This document shows positions 3,615-41,758 of a stretch of DNA of 64,000 nt, piece by piece. The position numbers and the translations under genes are program-made. The notes under the pieces are model-generated. The model saw nothing but the letters and a program-made list of their open reading frames with translations, did no database searches and was not told the origin of the DNA. Numbering within the stretch: position 1 is the stretch's first letter; every line of letters begins with the position of its first letter. The stretch spans positions 1,508 through 65,507 of the forward strand of contig ADNK01002468.1 in the NCBI GenBank assembly GCA_000320545.1. Direction: 5' to 3'. The stretch comes from Bigelowiella natans CCMP2755 (lineage: Eukaryota > Protista > Cercozoa).

Positions 3615-3950
3615 AGATATACATCTAGACATATGAGCAATGAGAGAGAGAGAGAGAGAGAGAGAGAGAGGGGGGGGGGGGGCTAAAGTACGTATGCGAT
3701 GCAGAATCAGCAATGCACATAGCGCTAGCTAGCACTCACAGCTTGTAGCATTCCAGGACACACATCCGTGCGTGCAGGTCAGGTTCTAGCAGCGATGGCC
3801 GCTTAGCATAGAGCATGAAGATAAGCCACGCTGACACGTACAAAGCATCTAAACATGTACATATATCGAATACTCTACTATGCCAAGCCAACTTAAGCTA
3901 CTCGATCCATAATAAGCATGCGAAGAGATCTAGATGTAGATGAGTTAATA

Positions 3951-4510
3951 GTTCCTCACATGTAGACCGTCGGCATCTGCTTACACATATGTGAGGCAGA
4001 GAGTCCATCTGCATCTAATCGACAACCATGGCTAGAGCACGTACATACGTTGAAAGTAGCTTCGCTTCTGCGCAGCGCAGTAAATCAAGGGATACGCATA
4101 TATATACATATATATATATATATATATATATATATATATATATATATATATATATATATATATATGCATTGCAAATTCATGAGAGGGAGAGAGTGTGTGT
4201 GTGCGCGCGCGCGCGCGCGCGCGCGCGCGCGCGCACACACACACACACACACACACACACACACACACGCGCGATAGTTCCTCTACACGTAGACCGTCCG
4301 CATCTTGCTTTACACATATGTGAGGCAGAAAAAAACAAAATGCAATATATATCTCTATATATCTATATCTCTATATCTATATATACAGAAACATACACAA
4401 AAAACCCTTCACCACCCATATATATATATATATACATATATATATATATATATATATATATATATATATATATATATATATATATATATATATGCATTGC
4501 AAATTCATGA
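3951..4510 (+). repeat. local ~330-bp-period tandem duplication with (TA)n, (CG)n and (CA)n tracts
   Basis: GTTCCTC..GTAGACCGTC.GCATCT..TTACACATATGTGAGGCAGA at 3951-4000 and 4277-4329; (TA)nTGCATTGCAAATTCATGA ends at 4182 and 4510. Confidence 0.8.
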
Positions 4511-4797
4511 TGGTTGCTGAAAAGTTGATTTTCTTTGTTGCAGTAGAAAATTATACAGCGAAAAAAATACTTGGCTATTTACAGCTAACGAAGGCGGTGG
4601 GCCACCGAGTCGTAGTGTCGTGCTTTACACGAAGTACATCCAGACTAGATTTGAATCGCAGCAGCAGCTAAATAACCACCGATAATTGGGACTGAAGAGT
4701 AACTGAAAGGTGAGACTTTTTTGTCGGGTACTCCACTACATGACTCCACTACATCATGTACAAAATGCGGCATCCGACTGGCAATGTATTCGCATCA

Positions 4798-5307
4798 CTA
4801 CTCTACGTCGCCGCCACAACATTCACCACTGAAGAAATCGTGCACTGTCGCATCGTTGTTGGGATCTGGTTCATCACTCCCAGAAGATCCAGCTCCAGCT
4901 CCAATTTTGTTGGCTACTTTTAGGTCCTCTTTGACTTGTGTGTGTAAGGCTTTGATTGCGTTCTCAAGTGAAGTAGCTTGTTGTTCAACACTGCCAGCAC
5001 CTCCTTCTGACCCTGCAAACTTTGCTATGATAGGATCAGATAGTTGAGAATCTCTTGCAAGCGCATCAATTCTCGCATTTGTCGGATCTGGACTCTCACG
5101 TGAGCTGTTCTGATGAATTCTGTAATAGATTTAACGTGGATGAGTTGAACACAACAGATGCTGTTGAGAGAATTCTATTCTTTTTGCATCAAATACTTTA
5201 ACTACTTCCAATTAATCTGATTGATTTAACCTTGAGGAGATGAGAAGAGGGATTATCATCCAGATCCCAAGCTTCAAGAGCGGCGAAACGACGCCTCCGC
5301 GACCCAT
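4798..5307 (-). CDS. small hypothetical protein with predicted signal peptide (2 exons)
   Basis: ATG at 5307 gives MGRGGVVSPLLKLGIWMIIPLLISSR. A phase-2 GT-AG intron (5230-5120) joins in frame to IHQNSSRESPDPTNARIDALARDSQLSDPIIAKFAG...ECCGGDVE*. No family recognised; the 3' end is uncertain. Confidence 0.5.
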
Positions 5308-6033
5308 TCCTCCTCAGCTTTTTTGAATCCAATTTCAAATTAAAACCCCAAAAACTCAACAACGACATCCATTTTGAATCAGCGACATCCAAGTTGAGAG
5401 CGCTTTAAATTTTTCCACATAGTGTAAAGTTGATACGTTCTTGCGATAAGCCCTCTCCCTAGTCGCTCATAACAAACGCCCATGAAAAGAAAGCTCGCCA
5501 CCGTTCAGAATTTCTCTCCTCGCTTGGCCTTGAGGCTGTGGGAATTTCAAACTTTGTTGCCTCTGGAAGCATGTCGCAAGAGTGAATCGTCCTGATACTT
5601 CTGTACTGCACTTTCGGTATTTAAAAATTGAAACTCTGAACACAGTTGTGCAAATAATGAGCTCCCTCCATTCCAACATAAGAACCTAACGGCTTGGTAA
5701 GTTGTGTGTGTTGTTGTTGAGATGCAACGGGGGCGGTGACGTTGGATCGACCTTTCATTTCTTCCTACTCCCCTACTCTCCTTTTCATTCGCTCATTTCC
5801 CGGGCCAGTTTTTCCAACTTGCCGTTTGGAAATTTGACTACGAGTCAAGAAGTAATGCCTATGGGCTTATTTTCTTCAGCCTCTCCACCCTTCATAGATC
5901 GGGAATATTACTTGCAATGTTTTTTAATCATCCGTTTCCATCCACAGACGGATGCTCTTGTCTTATTGTCGATTTATATTTTCCTTAATTCCACTGCCTA
6001 CATCATAAGTCGTATTCTTTGCCTTACAAAACA

Positions 6034-39231: not shown

Positions 39232-39597
39232 CGAGAAGAATCTCCCTCCTCAGGCCATCGATCCAACGACGCTTAACGCTCAAACTCCACTCCAACTAAA
39301 TGCGGTTACGATGTGTCACTCAGCTCGTGGTGGTATCCGTTTCCGAAGCTAAAAAGTCTTGGGAAATTGCAAATAATCTCCTCCCAAACTCCCAAAAAGC
39401 TACAAAGTGTCCTGCATTTACACCAAAAGAAGATCATTTCTGTGTTTCTCTTGGTGTCTTTATTTTTGAAACGCACCGCGGTGAACAAAATCTTTGTCGT
39501 TGGAGCTGTGCCCCATCGTAGCTAGCCGCCCCCCCGACCACCGAAAACGAGAAGAGAATGATGTCCTAAGTATTCCAACCCAAGCAAAAAAGAAATC

Positions 39598-40627
39598 ATG
39601 GCTCATTCCGACGACGATGCAGCCGTAGCATTCGTGATTATTCTTCTGGTGGGCTTGGGCTTGGGTCTCGGATCCACAGTAACATACGCAGATATTCGAA
39701 AATGCTTCCAGCAGAAAAAGCTAGGACTTATGATTGGAACCTGGCTCCATCTATTGATCCTCCCTATAGTTGCACTTACCTACTCAAAGATTTTTAGTAT
39801 CAAAGGGAACCTCTTCATCGGACTGATCCTAATGGCAAGTGCCCCTGGAGCAGCTCTTTCGAACCTTGTTACATATAAATCTAACGGTGACGTCTCCCTT
39901 AGCATAGTGATGAGTGGGGCGTCCACCTTCCTTTGCTTCGGAGCATTACCACTGCTCGTTTACATCTACTTGGGATTGGTCCAACCAGAAAATGTTAATG
40001 TGAAAATACCGTATAAAAGCATCGCCAACTCGTTGCTGATCCTCATTCTTCCTTGCGGACTCGGCGTCACAATTCGAACCTACCGACCAGAATATGCAAA
40101 AGTCACTGAAAAAGTAGGCTCGTATGTAGGGGTTTTGTTCTTATTGATTTACGTAATATACGAAGGGGCAACCAGCAGATACCTTTTTACTCGCGGCTTC
40201 GGGATATGGTGGTCGTCAATAACACTCCAGCCTGTTGGCACGCTCTTGGGCTCCTTTGTGGCCCATATTCTCTCCTTAGAAGTCAAACAGCAACGAGCAT
40301 TAGCCATCGAGACGGGGACGCTAAGCCCTGCTGTTATCATTACTCTCATCCAGCTCTCCTTTAGTACACAGGATGCAGGTAGTCTTCTAGTCCATTCCTC
40401 TTTGTTTGCACATTGCTGACTTAGTTCTTTCTGTACCTACAGAGGAGATTTCGATACCAAGCGTGCTCTACACTATCTCAATGGTGTGGAACTCCTACCT
40501 GATCATCTTAGTTTACAACGCAATAGATCGGTATTATGGTAAACATACGGATCCGAACAGTATAGAAATTAGTGACAGCAGCAGTCCACCCGAAGAAAAA
40601 GCCAACCAGTTTTACAGGAAACTGTAA
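39598..40627 (+). CDS. bile acid:sodium symporter family (SLC10/BASS) protein, 2 exons
   Basis: GLGLGSTVT, LLILPIVA, GLILMASAPGAALSNLVTYKSNGDVSLSIVMS, RALAIETG; intron ~40379-40442. Confidence 0.88.
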
Positions 40628-41479
40628 AAACGTTGGACTTTCTCTCGTATCTTAAGTTAATAACATTTAATGTTTATTACCTAGTTGATTATTGGAAGCG
40701 GTGCGATGCATCGCCACGCTCGCACAAGCCACATACATCCAACATCGAGCAGGTCGTTGCGCTTGCTTTCGATTAAATTTTGGGCTTGAGGTGTGCTGGA
40801 AAAGCAGACATCTCGCAATATTTTGAGAGTTGGACAAGTATAGATTTTGGCAACACCCCTGCTTCAATCATGATGAGAGCTTTCGCGTTCGTAGTTTTTG
40901 TCTAGAAGCATCTAATAAGAAGTCCTGACTAGGCAGCAAAACCAATCCGCTAGGGGCGCTTAGATATTACGTGCGCGCTCGCCCGGCGGCGGCTTCGATC
41001 CCAAGCTAATTTCGACTAGGTGTACAGAAGTTCATTTCACACACACGGTGTCGATACGATCGCGGACGCGCTATCATCGTCATTAAGGCTCGCATGCAAT
41101 GCAAGCTAGGCTGCAACATGCTAGCATGCCCATCATCAGCGCACACACGATGTAGCTGCATGCTACGAATGAATGCATCCTGATACGTTGCCAATGCAGG
41201 CTGTGGCGCCCGCTTAAATGGCATAGCTCAAAATGTCTAGATGTGCACTGGTGCGCATGCGCACCCATTGCGACATCACATGTGTGTTAAACAATGGACT
41301 CATGTGCACCCAGTCGAAATTAGCTCATCAGGATCGAAGCCGCCGCCGGGCGATCGCGCACGTGCATGATGTCCAAGCGCGCCTAGCGCGGATACGATTG
41401 GTTCATCACAAAAGACATGGATCATCTCGTAGCCCAGATGCAAATTCAACGTTTAATGTGCCGCATCTGAACACCATGC

Positions 41480-41758
41480 AGCTCAGATTGCGAAACCAAT
41501 TGAACTAGTGAATGCCATTGTGAATCGAAACAATGCAGACGAAACGACTGCCTGAAGCTAGCTGAAAAAGAGGCACGGACTGCTGCGCGCACCGCACGAC
41601 ATCGATGACAGGATGCAGATGCTTTCGAATGCATGAAACATAAACACACAACAGACGAGACAAATAGACATAACCTAAGCGCCGTAGCCGCTGCTTTGCA
41701 TGGCGGCTACATTAGGATGACTATTGAAAAGGTTTGGTCATTTCATTGCATCCGTCTC
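41480..41758 (+). repeat. second copy of the element's right ~280 bp including the TIR
   Basis: Aligns by eye with 37640-37927 (GCTCAGAT..GAAACCAATTGAA, GACGAAAC, GCACGGAC, GATGCTTT.GAATGCATGAAACA, TAGCCGCTGCTTTGCA, TACATTAGGATGA, CATTGCATCCGTCTCAC). Confidence 0.8.

Follow-up and report, generated by a model that had tools for sequence, protein, structure and literature searches.

A recurrent insertion mark, CTAG within a 4-bp duplication, behind the genes of Bigelowiella natans

The chlorarachniophyte alga Bigelowiella natans carries a short insertion mark in the DNA behind its genes. We studied this mark in a stretch of 64,000 nucleotides (the window; C1269:1508-65507 of the 91.4-Mb B. natans assembly) and in a further 200 kb from contigs C254 and C371, which together with the window form a sample of 264 kb. 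The mark, here called a unit, has the form X-CTAG-X, in which the same 4-mer stands on both sides of CTAG, with a net gain of 8 bp. Our analysis confirmed that the CTAG units are real, strongly enriched and present genome-wide, and each unit was shown to be a derived +8-bp event that consists of a 4-bp target duplication plus CTAG. By analogy with known transposons, we give about an even chance to the reading that a cut-and-paste DNA element, with CT..AG ends and a target duplication of 4 bp, left the units behind as footprints on excision; no donor was found. An excision footprint is thus our proposed mechanism, but there is a substantial chance of something not yet described.

The original prediction, which was made from the sequence of the window, had listed 23 units. 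All 23 were exact, including two cases with triple CTAG and two with 5-bp duplications, and its count of 9 of the 12 CTAGs at positions 20161-20820 in units was reproduced. The window contains 168 CTAGs, 25 of which are flanked left and right by the same 4-mer (binomial p 1.5e-31). In 200 block-wise, composition-matched first-order Markov simulations, the mean number of units per window was 0.89 and the maximum was 6. The longest exact flank match was 4 bp in almost all of the observed units and 5 bp in two. When all 256 central 4-mers of the window were compared, as had been proposed, the flank duplication rate of CTAG (15%) was above that of every other 4-mer save those of dinucleotide microsatellites, while other palindromes (CATG, GATC, TTAA and similar) reached 0.4-1%. 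Long (TA)n-type microsatellites, common to several places, lie at window positions 4098-4510, 26600-26746, 43217-43269 and 57322-57368 and dominate naive counts of flank duplications.

The 264-kb sample gave the same picture. A 4-bp flank duplication was found at 101 of 716 CTAGs (2.8 expected), a 5-bp duplication at 8 (0.7 expected) and a 3-bp duplication at 19 (11 expected). The excess at CTAG was 36-fold over naive expectation, compared to at most about 4-fold for the control centres CATG, GATC, TTAA, AGCT and TGCA. A scan of all centres of 0-8 bp with tandem repeats removed revealed CTAG as the sole strong outlier (76/716), followed by CTGG (21/588) and CCAG (11/640) over a background of 0.57%. 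At the scale of the whole genome, the sequence ATGTCTAGATGT (ATGT-CTAG-ATGT) and its complement were counted 865 and 868 times (total 1,733), while the reversed control was counted 2 and 8 times (total 10). The ATGT-CTAG-ATGT class accounts for 9 of the 101 sampled units, from which ~19,000 units are extrapolated for the whole genome; extrapolation from the density in the sample, 0.38 units per kb, gives ~35,000.

To these counts we added public RNA and DNA runs, mapped onto window positions 20300-26299 only. The DNA contigs of the 2021 and 2025 runs across this region showed no difference and no gap. The units were unchanged in these contigs, which argues against an error of this one assembly, with the limit that these runs are possibly the source material of the assembly itself. 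Some observations do fit an origin by chance, by slippage of microsatellites or by an artefact of library or assembly: (CTAG)n runs occur, and a (CT)n tract contains one of the units. This explanation is nevertheless vanishingly improbable. The 25 units stand against the simulated mean given above, the genome-wide excess over the reversed control is ~100-fold, and CTAG run lengths of 1, 3 and 5 are favoured over 4. Mutated derivatives and paralogue-specific gains, described below, also occur. Together with the identical contigs of the 2021 and 2025 runs, these results exclude chance or artefact as the source of the units. Full-text literature searches found no published description of an X-CTAG-X mark, in agreement with the earlier statement that no described system was known to leave this scar at such density.

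To characterise the event, we examined the duplicated bases. The duplication begins with A or C in 85-90% of units and ends with G or T in 83-85%; the preferences of the flanking bases are weaker and likewise symmetric. The outer duplicated bases are complementary in 50 of 100 units, compared to 36.7 expected. The target, A/C-N-N-G/T, is thus weakly palindromic, which is what would be expected of a DDE-type transposase or integrase with two-fold symmetry. CTAG itself was the target in 13 of the 101 sampled units, which gives a triple CTAG, and CTAG runs of one, two, three, four and five copies were found 657, 12, 10, 0 and 1 times, respectively, in the 264 kb. Triples are re-insertions into CTAG and, together with nested units, show that earlier scars were struck repeatedly. 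The nested units can be parsed exactly, as in ATGG-CT[AGAT-CTAG-AGAT]GG, and ATTG was used twice in succession. In the 1 kb at C254:45000-46000 there are 31 CTAGs and 10 perfect units.

The age and the direction of the events were also evident. Only ~25 cases with one mismatch were found above chance in the 264 kb, compared to 101 perfect duplications, and so the units are young on average. A dispersed repeat, repeat A, was aligned in nine copies (window 37500-37928 and 41469-41759 and seven other loci, L022-L028). The TGAA unit at 41501 is a private +8-bp gain which the eight other aligned copies, including 37500-37928, do not have, and the unit of locus L025 is likewise a private +8-bp gain in this alignment. 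The AACT unit at 37745 is private to its copy and lies within a larger insertion of 22 bp, which may be interpreted as a unit preceded by a short tandem duplication. Two Harbinger-type paralogues, L032 and L033, have three units in common, one of which reads CCAG in one copy. Collectively, the sharp 4-bp duplication, the weakly palindromic target and the private +8-bp gains uphold the central inference of the original prediction, namely a 4-5-nt staggered cut, fill-in and a fixed CTAG at the join. Plain 4-bp tandem duplications that obey the target rule were also more frequent in the islands described below than expected (38 compared to ~22, of 99), and this modest excess suggests that the same break is sometimes sealed without CTAG.

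To locate the events relative to genes, we compared unit positions with reading frames and RNA coverage. The units are strongly clustered into islands in the 264 kb. Of the 35 CTAGs within long open reading frames (ORFs) of the window, one belongs to a unit, compared to 24 of the 133 outside, a contrast that extends the earlier observation of none in the PRP5 and ABCC exons then checked. The island at 20425-20985 lies ~260-820 bp beyond the poly(A) end (~21245-21260) of a minus-strand gene and has an RNA depth of 0 to 0.65. The neighbouring plus-strand gene ends at ~25905, and the island at 25985-26415 begins 80 bp after it, with an RNA depth of ~0. The bodies of these two genes (21245-25905; 4.7 kb) contain 10 CTAGs and no unit, and no unit was found in their 13 mapped introns, which total 1,582 bp. 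This shows that the unit events are confined to untranscribed DNA just behind genes, past the poly(A) sites.

The fixed length of the duplication (4 bp) and the symmetry of the target indicate a dimeric enzyme of DDE type, with a cut staggered by 4 nt and subsequent fill-in. An invariant centre calls for an equally invariant source, and the simplest one would be the termini of an element that inserts and is later excised. Excision of an element is further backed by the palindromic nature of the one constant centre, by the derived +8-bp gains, by re-insertion, by the clustering past poly(A) sites and by the youth of the units. In the proposed mechanism, the enzyme would cut its target at A/C-N-N-G/T with a stagger of 4 nt (occasionally 3 or 5), and gap filling would duplicate the staggered target bases. 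When the element leaves, 2 nt would stay behind at each end (CT and AG), or both flanks would keep a 4-nt CTAG overhang. As CTAG is self-complementary, two such overhangs could anneal and be ligated without trimming, which would account for the uniformity of the scar. If a few copies inserted and excised often and favoured open or silent chromatin behind genes, they could leave ~20,000-35,000 scars and yet be rare or absent in the assembly.

On excision, elements of the Tc1/mariner group, Minos especially, leave behind the duplicated target with a few bases of their own termini; the Minos footprint is 6 bp, comprising the TA duplication and four terminal element bases. This is the closest known analogue, since its scar is likewise a target duplication with a few constant terminal bases, left by staggered cleavage and end joining. 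In contrast, the B. natans duplication is 4 bp at A/C-N-N-G/T rather than TA, its centre is a perfect, near-invariant palindrome, no donor is known and no Tc1/mariner transposase domain was detected in the genome. Precise excision of piggyBac resembles the proposed mechanism in that self-complementary 4-nt overhangs anneal and repair is uniform, but there a single TTAA is restored without a scar, and no piggyBac domain was found here in a search that had no positive control. The original prediction had named three candidate mechanisms. The excision footprint is the best fit of the three by this analogy, although neither an element with CT..AG or CTAG ends nor a partial remnant or matching transposase was found; symmetric addition to both 3' ends during repair and integration of a minimal 4-bp insert are kept as candidates.

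A number of results weigh against an excision footprint. The check for elements with terminal inverted repeats, CT...AG ends and a 4-5-bp target duplication yielded no convincing element in the 64 kb or in the 264 kb. In the window, occupied sites of the form X-CT..AG-X (at least 11 of 14 inverted-end matches) were limited to chance matches and one long palindrome. In the 264 kb, there was no convincing X-CTAG..CTAG-X pair up to 12 kb, no sequence recurred beside CTAG, and remnants of intermediate size were not found; short CT..AG inserts of 1-40 bp were not in excess save for nested and triple units. The portion of the genome read for a donor element was 0.4%, so rare donor copies may still exist. 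Six-frame family searches of the whole genome, whose reach was the families with a Pfam model (thus not, for example, Sola or Academ), gave no match to DDE_3 (Tc1/mariner) or DDE_Tnp_1 (IS4/IS5-type), and the piggyBac search mentioned above adds to these negatives. The 15 Harbinger-type matches found genome-wide are all hypermutated and TpA-free, and hence old. Known transposon footprints are usually heterogeneous, while the units are almost uniform: no spectrum of imperfect footprints was seen, and only CTAG was enriched, together with the TpA-mutated centres CTGG and CCAG. Finally, none of the 21 de novo indels in published mutation-accumulation lines contained CTAG (10.64898/2026.01.13.699255). 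A rough rate estimate predicts <1 event in that experiment, so these indels say little.

Candidate donors among the transposase genes were considered individually. The Harbinger-type DDE_Tnp_4 genes (L029-L034, on C777, C1193, C2929, C1777 and C1458) have open frames of 350-527 aa and a TpA rho of 0.01-0.08, and their paralogues differ almost solely by transitions (141 of 148 substitutions). They were rejected as donors, as no CTAG termini were seen; where similarity between copies stops, there is either ordinary sequence or a unit. Window positions 63360-63524 and 63836-64000 form an inverted repeat of 165 bp without mismatch, which has a 311-bp spacer and reaches the end of the window and of contig C1269. 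It is single-copy in the genome and was rejected as a transposon family; a genuine palindrome and a fold-back error of the assembly are both conceivable.

Integrases of the rve type offer a different source of the enzyme. Genome-wide there are 38 rve matches, with reading frames up to 1,646 aa and a TpA rho of 0.8-1.1, and, among the DDE families found, rve alone has many copies that are intact and free of hypermutation. Long terminal repeat (LTR) retrotransposons with rve were seen at L041-L043 and ~20 other places, with intact frames up to 1,646 aa, many of exactly 1,489 aa, and they look recently active. The order in L041, the sole LTR element translated, is gag, integrase, reverse transcriptase, which is that of the copia type. 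About nine copies of an element with a 360-aa rve integrase (L037-L040, L044) are 96-97% identical and have no units and no hypermutation. The integrase gene lies 39 bp from the element end, which reads AGAGTCTCC (a short direct repeat), and the element is probably a virophage- or Polinton-like insertion. As donors these integrase elements were rejected because their AGAGTC ends do not fit: such ends would give an AGCT centre rather than CTAG, a further point against the footprint reading.

The units could alternatively be by-products of such an integrase, from an LTR retrotransposon or a virus-like element, with aborted or minimal-substrate integrations leaving the duplication and a few terminal bases. 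Retroviral-type integrases make 4-6-bp duplications with small variation in length at weakly palindromic targets, in which the first base avoids T and the last avoids A. This preference resembles A/C-N-N-G/T, and the intact rve copies would supply the enzyme. We nevertheless consider this origin improbable: there is no known route from integration to a 4-bp insert, and the AGCT centre predicted by the AGAGTC termini is only weakly raised (14 compared to 4 expected). More generally, rve integrases and the superfamilies Sola, Ginger, Chapaev and Academ are alike in their 4-bp duplication (occasionally 3 or 5) and weakly palindromic target, but in these systems an element lies between the duplications, whereas here CTAG stands alone. 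Their termini are not known to be CT..AG.

Another source of a 4-nt stagger is type II topoisomerase (Top2). Breaks with 4-nt 5' overhangs in transcription-termination zones, followed by fill-in and end joining, would account for the location behind genes, for the dyad-symmetric weak target and for the small excess of plain 4-bp duplications in the islands. Trapped Top2 in yeast gives 2-4-bp duplications, in which a 4-nt 5' stagger is likewise filled in and rejoined, but no tetranucleotide is inserted there. Top2 predicts X-X rather than X-CTAG-X and has no source for the constant CTAG, and the CTAG units outnumber the excess of plain duplications by ~6 to 1. We therefore regard Top2 as a very remote explanation. 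Both the integrase and the Top2 readings explain the duplication but not the CTAG.

The units share their DNA with another mutational process. A preprint reports that, in B. natans, integrated DNA of viral or otherwise foreign origin undergoes A/T-to-G/C hypermutation specific to TpA; it makes no mention of CTAG insertions (10.64898/2026.01.13.699255). In 500-bp windows with a TpA rho <0.4 the unit density is 3.1 per kb, compared to 0.09-0.2 per kb elsewhere, and is thus 15-30 times higher. In strongly TpA-depleted windows 45% of the remaining TpA lies in CTAG, compared to 3% elsewhere. CTGG and CCAG units are the expected products of CTAG units after TpA-to-TpG/CpA hypermutation. An immunity of CTAG to hypermutation is unsupported, as CTGG and CCAG units are enriched and, of the three units common to the Harbinger-type paralogues, one has become CCAG in one of the two. 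Strict coupling of the units to hypermutation was rejected on the giant-virus and Harbinger-type loci. No unit was found in the 3.5 kb of integrated DNA at a giant-virus capsid locus (TpA rho 0.5), and the Harbinger-type genes, at a rho of 0.01-0.08, have units only downstream of the reading frame, like ordinary genes. Intact LTR and integrase elements are neither TpA-depleted nor unit-bearing. The two marks strongly co-locate, and hypermutation converts CTAG units to CTGG and CCAG, but hypermutation is a point-mutation process, the CTAG mark is an insertion, and their coupling is not strict.

These observations bear on the possibility that the scar is made without any element. A host or domesticated enzyme, recruited to untranscribed or silenced DNA, would break both strands with a stagger of 4 nt. 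The overhangs would be filled in and the join would receive a fixed CTAG, for example as a templated, self-complementary 4 nt on both 3' ends that then anneal. Such an activity would count as mutational or as genome defence, and may target the chromatin on which TpA hypermutation acts. In favour of direct scarring of this kind, no donor, no remnant and no Tc1/mariner, piggyBac or DDE_Tnp_1 transposase was found. The almost perfect uniformity of the centre likewise fits it, as do the extremely frequent strikes on the same few tens of bp, earlier scars included. The higher unit density in TpA-depleted windows, the share of leftover TpA in CTAG and the excess of plain duplications with the same target rule also agree with it. 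However, no enzyme is known to attach a constant tetranucleotide to broken DNA ends. In addition, the loose coupling to hypermutation, with a unit-free giant-virus piece and TpA-free Harbinger-type genes that have units only where ordinary genes do, speaks against this reading, and both marks could simply accumulate in old, untranscribed DNA. We consider element-free scarring unlikely, though a better candidate than an integrase by-product or Top2.

The positions of the units, islands and neighbouring features of the window are given in Table 1. The units at 10413 and 44468 depart from the A/C..G/T rule and are genic, and ~0.7 chance matches are expected per window, which is why both are probably chance. 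The island at 20425-20985 also contains another triple CTAG, without an exact duplication, and a CTGG derivative at 20460; a second CTGG derivative, at 36960, lies within the island at 36442-37756. The CTCT unit at 26404 is ambiguous because it lies within a (CT)n run.

Table 1. Units, unit islands, genes and dispersed repeats of the window
Feature	Positions	Strand	Remarks
ACAT-CTAG-ACAT	3621..3632	.	single exact unit; 63 bp past a 1-mismatch copy of the repeat-end motif at 3548-3558
CATG-CTAG-CATG	9065..9076	.	single exact unit
GTCG-CTAG-GTCG	10413..10424	.	inside long ORF; off target rule; probably chance
8-unit island: GCTG (triple CTAG), CTGG, ATGT, ATTG, CAGT, AGAT, CTGT, ATTA	20425..20985	.	
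Two expressed genes, tails outward	21245..25905	.	splice joints CT..AC and GT..AG; poly(T)/poly(A) loose ends
Island: ATGT, ATGTA (triple CTAG, 5-bp duplication), ACAT, ambiguous CTCT	25985..26415	.	exact units
CCTG-CTAG-CCTG	28658..28669	.	single exact unit
Island: ATGT, CATG, CTCTG (5 bp), CCCA, AACT	36442..37756	.	behind ABCC gene, ORF end 36013
Dispersed repeat B, ~178 bp, sharp ends	36726..36903	+	units abut both ends: 36714 CATG, 36904 CTCTG
Dispersed repeat A	37500..37928	+	constant 3' end CATCCGTCTCA; carries private AACT unit
Island: CATG, ATGT, TGAA	41117..41512	.	exact units
Second copy of repeat A, 5'-truncated	41469..41759	+	copy alignment, blast table
AGGC-CTAG-AGGC	44468..44479	.	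genic region without island; off target rule; probably chance

Dispersed repeats make up the islands of the window; for the DNA of the island at 36442-37756 there are 1,373 first-look candidates in the genome. Repeat A has a retroposon-like structure, with its constant 3' end and a variable 5' truncation, and its sequence is also present at window positions 26310-26393 and 36401-36411. The copies of the window lie behind genes and differ mainly by TA/TG/CA changes. A link between the units and the repeat-end motif CATCCGTCTCA was rejected, as it was seen in the window only and 64 of the 101 sampled units are >2 kb from any copy of the motif. For repeat B, the alignment of 40 genomic copies starts at query position 37 and stops at 214/215; a first look gave 244 candidates with 77-85% identity and no inverted termini. 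It seems unlikely that units abut both ends of the window copy by chance (roughly 0.002, post hoc). If other copies of repeat B are flanked by units in the same way, cleavage at element termini would be suggested.

We also looked for the mark outside B. natans. The ABCC-type protein of the window has an MMETSP transcript as its top database match besides itself, followed by Amorphochlora amoebiformis at 69% identity. At the A. amoebiformis ABCC orthologue locus (54 kb, mostly introns, with little intergenic DNA), 1 of 76 CTAGs is a unit and there is no enrichment. This locus (L050; GCA_054601695.1, BAAHQB010000150.1) is 25% G+C; its ABCC gene spans 34 kb, compared to a single 4.8-kb open frame in the window, and the 4-mer centres CGTA, TACG, GCAT and GTAC show 8-bp periodic repeats. 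A metagenome scan with the diagnostic triple-CTAG unit returned only one unrelated, GCATGC-rich contig. This contig (L049; Ga0194129_10207811) is AT-rich and 1.2 kb long, with GCATGC-based repeats and GGGCC(T)AAAGGCCC hairpins.

With ~20,000-35,000 near-identical scars by two independent extrapolations, the process that makes the units ranks among the dominant mutational processes of the intergenic third of the B. natans genome. The scars explain the palindrome-rich spacers between genes. Nested and TpA-mutated units allow events to be dated and ordered, and in resequenced lines the scars offer a simple test, by sequence, with which to find the enzyme responsible. A gain of 8 bp puts a reading frame out of register, and both strands of CTAG contain TAG. 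If the units are footprints, they are the record of an extraordinarily mobile and precise element of unrecognised type that strictly prefers DNA behind genes. Otherwise, they represent a new way for cells to write short fixed sequences into DNA. It is conceivable, though we think it doubtful, that a Bigelowiella enzyme system places CTAG and the 4-bp duplication in DNA behind genes that is untranscribed or silenced, perhaps within the surveillance that underlies the TpA hypermutation of foreign DNA. Element-free writing of this kind, if true, would be a previously unknown programmed mutational process and a possible natural enzyme for precise small insertions.

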